From positions 1 through 64,000 of the forward strand of contig MU619353.1 of NCBI GenBank assembly GCA_025201805.1: a stretch of DNA of 64,000 bases. Reading direction: 5' to 3'. This stretch comes from Parasitella parasitica NRRL 2501. Taxonomy: Eukaryota > Fungi > Mucoromycota. This document shows, piece after piece, positions 49,929 through 55,911 of this stretch (the first letter of the stretch is position 1; each line of letters opens with the position of its first letter). The notes beneath the pieces were generated by a model, which made no database searches, was not told where the DNA came from, and worked only from the letters and a program-made list of their open reading frames with translations. A program made the translations under genes and the position numbers.

Positions 49929-51020
49929 TTACAGCCTAAACCTGAAGTCAAGACAATCACTTCCTTTGGATGTGGTCGCTTTCAAATAGTCTATCTTGTC
50001 ATTATTCGACACGGCATTCCATTTACCGGCTCGGATTTTGTTTGTCAATCTTTATATCTAGTTCTTTGAAACATGACAAGGGCATGTAAAGCATAGTTAT
50101 TGCAACGATCAGCACCCTTTGCAATGATAATTGAAATTACAGGCCCAATTAAGAAAGAAGGGACAGACAGTCAGCAGGTTACTAGTGGTAACATCAAAGC
50201 CATAACCCTTGCATAACCCTTGATCAAGGTGGTTAGGCAAGTGCTGACTGGTGTTTGAGGCATAATACTATAGGTACAATAGTTTGTTATCAATGTGGTC
50301 ATACTATAAACATAAGCATGTCCAACATACAAAAAAAAATGAGAACACGCTAGCTGTGTATCGCAAAACAAAATTGACGACTTTCAATGCAATTATACCA
50401 ACAATACGAGTGAAGATGCCGTCAACGATGAATAACCATTTCCAACCTCCCAGTCCAGCAAAAGTTCTGCAAATGGACATGATTTAGCATGCTAATCAGC
50501 GACTATATCATATATTGCACATTTGCATGAATCAATGCATGAGTCCAGGTTACAATGGCTTAAGAGGTCATCAGAATGGGGATCCAGATATGAGCACCAA
50601 TGCGTTTAACAACAGGATTCTTAAAGAGAGTGCCTACGGTAAAAACAATCGAGTCAACAAGAATCCCTCTGTTGACACCACTGAAACCAAAGCCAATGTC
50701 AGCCGAAAGGTTGTTAGATGTAGCATCAGCTGCAAAACGTTAGCAATGAGCTGTACTCGTGTATATTGTATTATGAGTGTCTCAGAGATATTAGTGCGGT
50801 CCATGTTCAGTACAAATGTCATTAGCAGTACAAAAGACGTTAGGCGAATGGCGATCTTCTTCACTACAGCTCACTCTTCTTCTTTTTCTATCTATTGCAG
50901 ACCATGCACATAGCCTTCGGCATAAATTTCACTGTTATCTGTACTGTAGATGGAGGTGCCGTCTTGTCAGCAATCTTGATGCCAATCACTTGCTTTGGGA
51001 CTTGCTAGTTTAAGAATAAC
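49929..51020 (-). pseudogene. Unprocessed pseudogene of the MFS permease family (paralogue of 53982-55911)
   Basis: EGYVHGLQ*IEKEE*, FVLLMTFVLNMDRTNI, VKRIGAHIWIPILMTS*AIVTW, GWKWLFIVDGI, SIMPQTP, LDFRFRL*. In-frame stops, deletions and retained intron positions. Confidence 0.88.
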
Positions 51021-51502
51021 ACGGAAGGAATATGCAATATAAAGTATTTCGTATATACTGTCAGAGTACCTTTTTTGGCTCGTAAACTTCTTGACATTCT
51101 CTATCCTCCTGACATTAAAGCAAAATCAGTCGAAACAAAGACACACTCTTTTTGTGCAACTGCACATTCAGTAATAGATGCTGGAAAATACATCATATTT
51201 CCTCTTTTATGATCATCTAGAAAAGCCTTGTATACTTCCTGCTCTTCTATTCAGCATTTGATTCTGAAGAATACGATAATGGCAATTTTTCGGACCTGTG
51301 TTACACACACGGTTATTCCATATCACGTCTACACACACACGGTTAAATGGCTTTCAAGTACGGCACATTACATATGGTGAAATAACGCCATTGCACAGGC
51401 TCAGTTACACATAATTCCATTTTGATGCATGTCGCCATGTTGGTTAAAACACTGAATATTCTAGTATAATCACGCAATTCAGTTTTATTTTTTACTTTTT
51501 TT

Positions 51503-52956
51503 TCAAACTGATAGCTTCTTTTTAATGGAGCTTAATTGACCCAAGACGGCCCTCTTCAAAAACATAGTGCTGGACTGGCAAATGTCTTCTATCAAACTGG
51601 TGCTGTCAAATTCAATGATAGCCTGTGCATATTTACTGGTAAGCAGCAGCAGTAGTTGCATCGAGCCTTTATCTTTTGGATTGGACTGTACTATGGTTTG
51701 AAGTGGTTGAATGAGATCAAACAAAAGCGTCTTGTCGAAATGCACCAGTGGCTGTGTGCTTAGAATGGTGCTCATTATTTGAAAAACAAGATCGCCCCAT
51801 GGGCGTAGATAGTTGCGGTCATTACTAGATACCAAGCTTGTATTCAGGGCAAAGTAAGATTCGCCGTCAGACAAGACGGTTCTTAATGAGGATAAGTAGG
51901 AGCTCTCTACAGCGGATGTTAGACTTACTGCAGTAGCATTAGTCGCTGCGATGGTGTCAATTCATTGATTGACTTATTAATAACTTCACATTGAGGCTTG
52001 CCGAGTTCTGATTGAAATAACAAGGGTACAAGCAAGCCATCGATGATACATTTTCCTTGTTCCTTGGCGAGTTGTTGTATGCTGCTCATTAAAATTCTCG
52101 GCACATTCGATTTCAATGCCACAATCTACAACGCCCCCTACTTTTTTAGTGAAAAGCGCACACTGTTGTATTGAGTCATACCTTTGGATATGTGGCAGAG
52201 TAGGCAAGATAGGCTGCATTTGGACCTGGCACATTTTCTGCTTTTGATATCAAGTTTAGCAGATCGGCAGTGATTTCATCTTCCCAAGATTGCATATCAA
52301 TAGACGCAACAGCGGCTTTTAGCTGGCCAATGTGAGCGTCATTTGTTAATACATCAGCTGTGTATGTGTGTATGTGTGTGTTTTTTTTCTTTTTTGCTTA
52401 CTTGTGTTCGAGGTAAATTAACAAGGTTTTCCAGTGATTCTAATTTCACTTGTGTCTGGATTTGTGAACTCGAGTTGGCGAATATAGACATGGATTCTAT
52501 CAGACGTGCTAGATCAGGCGAATCTTCCTGCATAGGATCGTCCTGTTTTTGAGCACTGATGTTTTGCATTGGTTCAGTTTCCTTGCTGCGTTTAGACATG
52601 ATGGGTTTTATCGTAGGATTATCGATGTATATACATGAAACGATGAGTTAACGATATTATATTGCATATATAGACGACAAGCATTCGGTTGGTCAATTGA
52701 AAAAAAAAAAAGGATATTATTATAGGCTCAAGGGGTTTTACTCCACTTGATTGCAACCAAACAGGGTCTACTACAACACAACACAAATAGGAAAGCTAGT
52801 CTCATAGCATAAACATGAGCATTATTTACCTGCTTGTCTCTGCCCTTTGGGATCAAATGTGGATTTTAAACTATCAGAAAACTGGAATCCTTGATGTTCA
52901 GTAAGCTTATTACGAATAGCATTCAGTTTTTCTTTATTGATATCAGCAACAGACAT
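51503..52956 (-). CDS. FANCE: Fanconi anaemia group E (FANCE)-like protein, six exons including one AT-AC intron
   Basis: C-terminal LLVPLL..ELGKPQCEVI, RPWGDLVFQIMSTIL, LLLLLTSKY and STMFLKRAV parallel the FANCE C-terminal domain as I recall it (PWKEETFLVLQSLL, LMLTVMTKY, NTTFLRKSL). The 5' exons join in frame through intron 52627-52717. Confidence 0.78.
52627..52717 (-). other. U12-type (minor spliceosome) AT-AC intron, 91 nt
   Basis: 5' end ATATCCTTTT, branch-like TCGTTAAC (52647-52654), 3' end TATAC. Phase-0 removal restores the reading frame. Confidence 0.82.
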
Positions 52957-53981
52957 TAGTGTAATGAACTTTTTTTTTTTTTTTTTTTCGCGCGGGTTCT
53001 TATTACTTTTACAGCTAAACACGGTGTCACATATTATTTGGTTTTACCGCATAATCCGTCCACACTCCCTGGAGACATGTACGCAGCTCAAATTTATCGT
53101 CGCACCGTTTAGCTAGGCAGTGTCTGCTATGTCAATTTAGATGCCTTAATGCCCAATTACATGCACTACTCTACTGTGCAATTGCTTTGCCAGCACGAAT
53201 CTCTCTATGGTTCCCGCTGGTGTTAATCGGGGCTCAGGGTATTGTTCTACTGCTTGTATCTATTGCATATGCTCGACATTAAATAGTAAAATATATTACG
53301 TGATAATTACTAAAGTTCCATTGAGATGTTATCCCCTTGATATAATAAAGAAGCAATCTTGCGTATATAATAGAATCTTATGGTAGAAAAAAGTCCACAT
53401 CTAACAGTGATTGGCAATCTTGAAATGCAATTGCATCTTTTTGTGAACATTACCATAAACGACTTGTGTGTGTAATGTGTTACGTTGATCCGAGATGTGT
53501 TTGTTTGTTATTTCACCGAGTTTTTTTTTTTTTGCAAGTAATATTTGCCATCAAGATTTGTTTATTCATCAATATTGTTCATAGTAACTGCTCGTTTTCG
53601 ATATTAATACATGAACTTTTAGAAAGTCGGTTCTACCAGATACTCATAAAAACTACGAAATCAATAATAGGCACAACCATACCAAACAATAACGAAAAAG
53701 CCAGAGATTATTATCCATGTCCAACTTAAGTGATTCATCAATAATTTTAGAGGCAATTATCATACTGAGTGGGAATAACCCATTTATAGTAAAATCAAGT
53801 ACCACTGACAATTCTATTCAGTGCAAGTATTATTGATGAACACCTAATTGCACAATCATTTGACAGTATGATTAATGTCTTCAATCTATAATATTATACA
53901 ATGTTGATTGTATATAAATACAGAATTTTTAACTAGTTTTTTTTTCTTCTTCTGTATACCTTACTTTCTGAATAATTCATA

Positions 53982-55911
53982 ATGGGCTTTCTTGAAGAAA
54001 AGGCTGATGCTACTTTAGATACTCACGCATTAGATATACCCAATGAAAAGGTCCAGGTAATTGATCTAGTGGGCGAAAAGCAAAAGCAATCGCCACCATC
54101 CGATTCTTCCTTTAGCAGTGCTTCTTCTGCCACAAGCGTGACATTAGGAGTCGAAGGCTATGTTTCTGACCTCCAATGGACTGACGAAGAAGAGAGAAAG
54201 GTCTTGTTCATCATAGATACGAGGCTTATGCCGTTCGTACTATTGATGACGTTTGTGCTGAACATGGATAGAACCAATATTTGTATGTCATTGCTATAGA
54301 GATTTGAAATGTCACTACTAATAATCAATTGTGTATATAGCTAATGCTATTTCGGATAACTTGCCCGCTAATTTGGGATTTGGCATCACTGGTGTGAATA
54401 CGGCTACTCTTCTTTATTCGATTGTCTTTACAGTAGTTACTCTTATTACTAGTCCAATTGTCAAGCGAATCGGCCCACATAAATGGATTCCTATTTTGAT
54501 GTCTTCCTGGGCTATTGTTACGTGGGCTCATGCTCTACTTCAGGTAAATGACCATAAATAGCCATGCTTTTCAAGTACTAAGCATTTCTTTGTTGCCCAT
54601 AGAACTATCGCGGTTTCCTTGCTGTTAGATTCTTTATTGCACTTACTGAGGCTGGTTTCATTCCGTCTAGTCTAATCTACTTGACGGGCTGGTACAAGAC
54701 AAATGAATTAGCTACTCGTCTGTCCTGGTTTTGGGGCATCCAAGCGTTTGCGTCTGCCTTCTCTGGGTTGATTTCGTTTGGTATCTTCAATATGTCTGGC
54801 ATTGGCGGCCTTTATGGGTGGAAATGGCTCTTTATTATTGACGGTATCATTACTCACATTATTGGCTTTATCGCAATGTAAGTACTATTTCTGCGTGTGA
54901 TACATTCTACCATGTTATCAAGCTAATCCTTTTGACAAGCTTTTACGTTCCCGCTAGTCCATTTCATACTGCAGGCTCGATTCGAGGCAAGCAGGGCTGG
55001 TTCACTGACCGCCAAAAACAAATTGCTGTTACCAGAGTCATTCGGGATGATCAGTCTAAAATTGCTCAAGAGGAAAGGGTGACATGGCACGACGTCAAGA
55101 TTTGTGTACTTGACACGAAACTATGGACACATCTGGTTATTACATTTCTAAGGTTTGTATATATTTAATATGATAATGAATGAATATAGCCTAAATCAAA
55201 TCACTAGCATCATGCCTCATACTCCTATTTCTACCTACCTGCCTACACTTATCAGGGGCTATGGATTTACCGTAACCATCAGCAACCTGTTAACCGTTCC
55301 TGCAGCAATCATCAATCTAGTCGTTTCAATATTAGTAGCTCGCAGTGCTGATAAGCGAGGCAATTATGCCTTTCATGCCATCTTTGGGGTCTTTTGGTCG
55401 TTAGCTGGATTCTTGGCCTTGGAGCTTTTACCTGGAGGCGCTGGACGCTGGAACTTTTATGCCGCTGCTTTGTTTCTGGCCTCATCTCCTACGTGGCATG
55501 GTATGCACATTGCTTGGATGTCATCTAACCTGGCACCGCTAGGAAAACGTAACATCGCTTTAGGCGCTGTTATTGGTGCTGCCAATATCTGTGGGGTGCC
55601 CGGCTCCCAAATATACCGTTAGTATAAATTGCATCGTTGCTGTGTGTGTAATTTGACATAAAATTGACACTTTTTGCAATGATTTAATAGAGGCCGATGA
55701 TGCTCCTCGCTTCTTTAGAGGCAACTGGATCAACTTTAGTATTACAACTGTTGCTGGTATCTTTCTGTTGGTCCAACATATTCGATACACATTGACAAAC
55801 AAACTTCGCGAGAAAAAATGGAGTTCTTTCTCTGATGAGGAAAAGAAAAAGTATCTTGACAGTACCAAAGATGAAGGCTCAAATCGCTTAGATTACAGAT
55901 TCAGGATTTAG
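53982..55911 (+). CDS. MFS transporter, anion:cation symporter (allantoate permease-like) family
   Basis: IDTRLMP...MDRTNIANA, VRFFIALTEAGFIP, WYKTNELATRL, GWKWLFIIDG, DDAPRF..G, C-terminal DYRFRI. Confidence 0.93.

Follow-up and report, generated by a model that had tools for sequence, protein, structure and literature searches.

Minor (U12-type) introns and the Fanconi-pathway gene FANCE have both already been reported from fungi of the Mucoromycota type (bioRxiv 10.1101/2022.09.24.509304; PMC2396436 for the snRNAs; PMC11061109). FANCE is present and expressed in early-diverging fungi including Mucorales, and the survey that describes this makes no mention of introns (PMC11061109). Among minor introns, phase 0 is reported to be the least common (bioRxiv 10.1101/2022.09.24.509304). 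A minor intron in FANCE was not found in the searchable literature. For human FANCE as a minor-intron gene, the single paper in which both terms occur deals with a FANCE knock-down that affects minor splicing and with no FANCE intron. The published number of minor introns in Mucorales amounts to about 4 to 20 per genome. Since they are so few, each verified case with RNA support is of use in calibrating intron classifiers and annotation pipelines for early-diverging fungi.

In animals, minor introns are often spliced slowly, and their retention is regulated there via unstable U6atac and stress-kinase control. For the fate of such introns in evolution, Burge, Padgett and Sharp are said to have proposed in 1998 a two-step U12-to-U2 model, in which AT-AC ends first become GT-AG and the U12 boxes are lost thereafter.

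The gene described here is located on the minus strand (52956-51503) of the window, i.e. the whole stretch of 64,000 nt of DNA that was analysed. The element at 52717-52627 is very probably a constitutive U12-dependent AT-AC intron in phase 0 within the FANCE orthologue of a Mucoromycota-type fungus.

Gene structure and relationship to FANCE

The gene comprises six exons, and the U12-type intron separates exons 2 and 3 (Table 1). The letters and coordinates originally given for 52627-52717 are correct on the minus strand. Excision of 91 nt keeps phase 0 and joins the two upstream exons in frame to the remainder of the FANCE homologue, as had been proposed, so that a protein of about 373 aa results. 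Exon 1 encodes a conserved N-terminal helix and the motif QGF.FS..LK..F.

Table 1. Features of the FANCE gene in the window, homologous introns in related loci and candidate minor introns elsewhere in the genome
Feature	Position or locus	Strand	Basis or remark
Exon 1	52830..52956	-	ATG 52956-52954; 127 nt, 42 codons + 1 base; contig covers 52942-52830
Intron 1, GT-AG, 59 nt	52771..52829	-	spliced joint 52770/52830 (run X1); also in orthologues
Exon 2, 53 nt, ends ...L-E-P-I-I	52718..52770	-	final codons GAG CCT ATA ATA
U12-type AT-AC intron, 91 nt, phase 0 (very probable)	52627..52717	-	RNA joint; intron shared by 13 loci at this position
5' splice site ATATCCTT, followed by T-run	52710..52717	-	exact match to U12 donor; predicted U11/U6atac pairing site
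Branch-site box TCGTTAAC	52647..52654	-	one mismatch (7/8) from TCCTTAAC
Exon 3	52402..52626	-	starts ATC GAT AAT; nine codons (IDNPTIKPI), then inner ATG 52599-52597
Premature TAA in retained form	52619..52621	-	reading frame
Intron 3, GT-AG, 79 nt	52323..52401	-	contig pieces 52404-52626 and 52182-52322 adjacent in one record; joint repeat-masked
Exon 4	52182..52322	-	sequence and contigs
Intron 4, GT-AG, 56 nt	52126..52181	-	spliced joint
Exon 5	51929..52125	-	sequence and contigs
Intron 5, GT-AG, 47 nt	51882..51928	-	spliced joint
Exon 6 and stop codon	51503..51881	-	best-conserved part of FANCE C-terminal helical-repeat domain
ATATCCTT...AC intron (eight loci)	window, L011, L020, L006, L008, L009, L017, L019
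ATATCCTT...AA intron (one locus)	L013		only in-frame choice there
GTATCCTT...AG intron (one locus)	L014:1748-1844, GCA_002105175.1		TTCTTAAC box 31 nt from end; T-rich tract
Ordinary GT-AG intron (three loci)	L015, L016, L018
Strict AT-AC elements, candidate minor introns	C1:536513, C23:305652, C28:174055, C36:225172, C69:69042
Further strict AT-AC elements, candidate minor introns	C73:73765, C77:38628, C78:129964, C108:15671

The family assignment is carried by profiles and by a predicted structure. The gene of the window was examined one exon at a time, and the data on full-length proteins derive from database orthologues. Scanned singly against Pfam, the exons of the window gave no match, and a profile of exon 6 retrieved nothing among PDB sequences. 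ESM Atlas features of exon 6 yielded generic helical-repeat look-alikes only, which were discarded. An exhaustive profile search of 1.84 billion proteins recovered only 29 representatives of the family, several of them full-length models, and exon 6 of the window shares 60-79% identity with family members. A profile built from 13 members (A2) matches human FANCE (2ILR) with E 2.2e-12 along chain residues 10-261 of 264 and chain E of 7KZP with E 1.1e-11. PF11510 (FA_FANCE) is the top Pfam family for 5 of these 13 members (best E 4e-6), mostly just below the cut-off; the orthologue P0015, for example, scores 21.5 bits at a gathering cut-off of 22.2. The AlphaFold model of P0015 (pLDDT 79, pTM 0.70) finds 2ILR and 7KZQ_E as top matches in Foldseek, with TM 0.79 over the target. 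Enp1/bystin has a fold similar to this model at only about 10% identity. Judged by family profile and predicted fold, both of which rank human FANCE first, the gene is a fungal FANCE orthologue.

With human FANCE (2ILR; chain E of the FA core complex in 7KZP and 7KZQ), the C-terminal helical-repeat domain can be aligned over its full length. At about 300-430 aa, the fungal proteins are shorter than the 7KZP chain with its 555 residues, and their N-terminal helix with QGF.FS..LK..F has no detectable counterpart in the human sequence. In the model of P0015, the N-terminal exons form a helix (residues 3-19), and the position of the U12-type intron falls into a disordered linker.

Several features were observed in the neighbourhood of the gene. 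On the minus strand, a CCGCGCGAAA box is located at 52986-52995, some 30 nt ahead of ATG 52956, and a run of 19 A comes after it. Three related loci (L008, L009 and L011) have TTCGCG or CGCGGAAA-like boxes at similar sites upstream of their ATGs. By their letters, these boxes resemble E2F sites or MluI cell-cycle boxes, as would be fitting for a DNA-repair gene of S phase. Judging by the position of the box, the 5' UTR may be very short. A tRNA-ligase gene (PF09511) is the immediate upstream neighbour of FANCE in at least seven related loci. Here, it is found on another contig (C12:139677-140348), and synteny is lost at slightly over 80 nt upstream of the FANCE start. Two ORFs on opposite strands, 50634-50864 (minus) and 53982-54299 (plus), flank FANCE and share the MFS-transporter-like peptide LLMTFVLNMDRTNI, suggesting paralogous transporter genes. 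An inverted duplication around the gene was considered and rejected, as the DNA contains only a 42-nt arm pair with 74% complementarity.

Splicing of the 91-nt intron and the minor spliceosome

RNA evidence comes from the public run X1, which is available as contigs only and whose kind was guessed as RNA. Its contigs were compared with positions 50900-53700 of the window. The run holds 60% of the sampled words from the gene region, which is approximately the exon share. In the intergenic flanks of the gene the depth is zero, which argues that the material, although its kind is a guess, is RNA and not genomic DNA. The contigs skip 59 nt at intron 1, 56 nt at intron 4 and 47 nt at intron 5, in each case with GT..AG on the gene strand. 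Likewise, 91 nt are skipped at 52624/52716, with two letters of placement ambiguity; in the contig comparison, the row of this joint carries the label 'between: not known'. The joint is compatible with the AT..AC placement 52627-52717, and this placement is the one that fits the consensus. In addition, one contig begins at exactly 52626 and another stops at the exon-2 boundary. A spliced joint that fits the junction 52718/52626 named in the original prediction is thus present among the contigs of this run.

The signals within the intron agree with U12-type splicing to different degrees. The donor is an exact match, and the branch box TCGTTAAC is located 20 nt from the AC end (...TATATAC), i.e. 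at the far, weak end of the usual range of roughly 10-20 nt. The stretch TCGTTAACTCAT, which consists of the branch box and the next four bases, can pair with AUGAGUAAGGA in the U12 candidate; 10 of 11 positions are complementary, and one A is bulged. The 91 nt contain neither a GT start nor a polypyrimidine tract nor a 3' AG. It had been stated originally that no consensus GT-AG solution was found. Formally, an exhaustive listing does contain frame-keeping GT-AG excisions, e.g. 52741-52582. They were rejected, since such excisions would remove conserved codons, and their sites are covered by continuous RNA contigs.

The components of the minor spliceosome were searched in the genome (32.8 Mb, 450 contigs) with Rfam cut-offs, and one full-length candidate was found for each of the four minor snRNAs that the original prediction had asked for. 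The candidates for U11 (68.7 bits, cut-off 39, 5' box AAAAAGGG) and U6atac (64.5 bits, cut-off 33, box AAGGAGAGA) lie above the thresholds. Those for U12 (49.1 bits) and U4atac (47.9 bits) are just under the gathering cut-off of 53. In the alignments, all four have the expected pairing boxes and Sm sites. Furthermore, a strict pattern (ATATCCTT, 30-130 nt, TCCTTAAC, 8-16 nt, AC) identified 9 other distinct elements in the genome (10 matches, two of them overlapping) compared to 0 for the reversed pattern used as control. This means that minor introns are a real class in this genome.

These data also bear on the question whether the U12-like signals are coincidental and the 91 nt are removed by the major spliceosome, either behind a chance motif or as a U2-type AT-AC intron. 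The donor alone is uninformative: the 8-mer RTATCCTT occurs 6 times in the window versus 4.5 times expected, which is not above chance, so that the site rests on the RNA joint and on conservation in 13 loci. The mismatch in the branch box and its distance from the 3' end would fit coincidence as well. However, the five other RTATCCTT sites in the window have no branch box, and a substrate of the major spliceosome would have to do without GT, polypyrimidine tract and 3' AG. In addition, the donor, the branch box and the 3' end are the only parts of the intron that are invariant across species (see below), and both the four snRNA candidates and the other strict AT-AC elements are found in the genome. 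Either variant is so improbable as to be nearly negligible.

To judge from these signals, it is probably the minor spliceosome that removes 52627-52717. U11 and subsequently U6atac would pair with the donor ATATCCTT, and U12 would pair with TCGTTAACTCAT, leaving the branch adenosine bulged. The 3' end, the AC about 21 nt downstream, would be picked by its distance from the branch site. Excision would then link the N-terminal segment encoded by exons 1 and 2 to the FANCE helical-repeat domain.

Conservation of the intron and of the N-terminal exons

A word search with exon 6 yielded exon-level ORFs in the assemblies of relatives, and exons were mapped one by one in 13 distinct homologous loci. 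In 13 of 13 loci an intron is located at the same position and in the same phase, directly after an exon-2 end of the P-(I/V)-I type. The position in orthologues, which had been named as a check, thus supports the intron. Its ends differ between loci (Table 1). The AT-AC form includes L019 from Funneliformis geosporum, a member of the Glomeromycotina (PMC11736945), and an ordinary GT-AG intron is found, among others, in L016 from Hesseltinella vesiculosa, Mucorales (PMC8070225). In the seven aligned species with AT-AC or AT-AA ends, only the donor, the core of the branch box and the last bases are invariant. In six aligned relatives, the box (T/A)CCTTAAC is present without mismatch at 11-16 nt from the 3' end, and in Funneliformis the branch box TCCTTAAT is located 9 nt from the intron end. 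Among the orthologues with a recognisable box, the species of the window has the weakest one, with a G in the box, and the longest distance from branch site to 3' end.

A tree of the last exon (MAFFT and FastTree, about 125 residues, rooted on Funneliformis as single outgroup, some supports weak) splits an AT-AC clade from a GT-AG clade. L014 belongs to the GT-AG clade and still has the U12 donor box. By comparison of these sequences, it looks as if the AT-AC state were ancestral to Mucorales-like fungi and Glomeromycotina and as if a conversion to GT-AG, U2-type splicing had occurred in one clade. The L014 intron looks like a frozen intermediate between minor and major types. The intron in the window would then be an inherited relic that was already AT-AC in this common ancestor.

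Originally, the two upstream exons were regarded as orphans. Instead, they encode the conserved N-terminus of the family, as far as can be judged from comparison of the loci, with 52956 as the presumed start codon. In 12 sequences, the exon-1 peptide can be aligned beginning with its Met, and five annotated full-length models include the N-terminus. Exon 1 has 127 nt in the five close species examined, exon 2 has 53-56 nt in close relatives, the P-(I/V)-I end of exon 2 is conserved, and so are exon lengths and phases. The spacing of nine codons before the inner ATG is kept in close relatives. Differences to the two nearest relatives are enriched at third codon positions (32/61, p ~0.005), a rough value because both comparisons share the window, and by chance, 69 open codons would be expected with a probability of about 0.008.

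This conservation has to be weighed against a possible 5' UTR intron. If transcription started downstream of ATG 52956, exons 1 and 2 would be a leader with a small upstream ORF, and the protein would be translated from ATG 52599. The contigs of run X1 reach up to 52942, where an Illumina adaptor follows; this point lies 14 nt within the ORF that begins with ATG 52956, so this run does not show transcription of the start codon. Moreover, P0013, the public model of a close relative (L020), has 309 aa and begins with the inner Met. On the 3' side, the same contig set breaks off 22 nt before the stop codon, which means that the end of a contig does not mark the end of a transcript. It is common for library protocols to miss a few tens of bases at the 5' end of an mRNA. 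The assembly from which P0013 originates, L020, has the same two exons and the AT-AC intron, both unannotated, just upstream of the model. Together with the conserved peptide, the conserved exon lengths and phases, the third-position enrichment and the full-length models, this renders a leader function of exons 1 and 2 very unlikely. A start only downstream of 52717, which would have spoken against the intron, is contradicted by the contigs that extend to 52942. Independently, a contig of low depth (5.4) was observed in run X1 over 53060-53334, upstream of the gene. It has no convincing ORF and could represent an unknown transcript or an occasional long leader.

The case of P0013 is not isolated: at least three public gene models, those of L020, L019 and L013, mishandle the intron. 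In the Funneliformis model (L019), the AT-AC element is buried in a 310-nt intron. In the L013 model the intron has the right length and is shifted by 3 nt onto TC..TT ends. The L017 model contains the AT-AC intron correctly. The expectation that gene callers would miss this intron is borne out by these models, and annotation-based intron surveys would overlook it in at least three assemblies, because it is unannotated or mis-annotated there. Compared to the 309 aa of the close relative's public model, the corrected model of about 373 aa gains a conserved N-terminal segment.

Retained transcripts and comparison with known systems

Besides the spliced contigs, run X1 contains a separate 149-nt contig (52597-52745) which retains the U12-type intron 52627-52717. 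For the other readable introns of the gene, no retained contig was found in this run; the region of intron 3 is masked as repeat. Depths are 43.6 for the spliced and 25.3 for the retained contig and 73-75 for the flanks, so the sums fit a bubble with two branches. However, contig depth is a poor measure of abundance, as the tool itself warns, and a sizeable retained minority is therefore only an inference from these values. The original prediction had assumed that retention stops translation within the intron and leaves an in-frame ATG at 52599. The ATG is indeed present downstream. The stop is not in the intron: the frame is open through its whole length, and the TAA at 52621-52619 is situated 6-8 nt into exon 3 (ORF 52619..52786). 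This stop is premature, with three exon junctions downstream, and precedes the in-frame inner ATG by 20 nt. Retention would therefore lead the reading frame to the premature stop and would reduce productive output.

Since the species of the window combines the weakest branch signal with a retained RNA form, this intron is probably spliced slowly or incompletely, at the expense of productive output. Two further-reaching proposals build on this. According to the first, the intron is a regulatory gate or an isoform switch: rate-limiting minor splicing would set the FANCE dosage, or it would decide whether the long protein (start at ATG 52956) or the short one (start at ATG 52599) is made. A retained contig for the U12-type intron only, the position of the branch signal at the weak end among the orthologues, and the premature stop shortly before an in-frame ATG are in accordance with this proposal. 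The slow splicing of many minor introns in animals would agree with it, too. By contrast, four related lineages have GT-AG ends at this position, three without U12 signals and one, L014, with a relic donor box only. This means that U12 dependence is dispensable for the gene. The inner Met is kept only in the nearest clade, while others have RPHL, QPRL and SRKR there, and its use in the retained form would require reinitiation after an ORF of about 97 codons. Furthermore, a pan-eukaryotic survey detected no regulated minor splicing in Rhizophagus (bioRxiv 10.1101/2022.09.24.509304). Altogether, a gate or switch is unlikely. Its two halves fare differently: a switch between long and short isoforms is improbable on account of the restricted inner ATG and the reinitiation needed. 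As to the gate, the GT-AG sister clade argues against a necessary, conserved function, and the retained contig leaves slow or partial splicing plausible.

According to the second proposal, the intron has drifted to a weak branch signal in this species, so that a considerable fraction of the FANCE mRNA would remain unspliced and fall to the premature stop, and the minor spliceosome would act as a dosage limiter that responds to stress or to the cell cycle. This, too, is unlikely. If it were true, the dosage of the minimal fungal Fanconi pathway would in fact be limited by the activity of the minor spliceosome. The preferred reading is a constitutive minor intron.

The regulated retention of minor introns in animals provides one point of comparison. 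Likewise, retained RNA is found here for the minor intron only and carries a premature stop. In animals, however, retention depends on conditions, whereas here it is known from the contigs of a single run, and the test in Rhizophagus was negative. A second comparison concerns the conversion of U12-type to U2-type introns by subtype switching. At one homologous position, the forms AT-AC, AT-AA, GTATCCTT..AG (branch box displaced) and ordinary GT-AG are found, which provides a compact natural series for the change from minor to major introns. In comparison with the two-step model, the polarity of this series depends on a tree of about 125 residues with one outgroup. The closest known counterparts of the intron are the minor introns of Rhizopus, Phycomyces and Rhizophagus irregularis. 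These have the same donor and branch consensus and AT-AC ends, they are short, and they are rare in each genome. As with the catalogued minor introns of Mucoromycota and Glomeromycotina, the genome has the full set of four minor snRNAs, here as candidates. The FANCE intron is thus one more example of a known intron kind, with no new mechanism involved.
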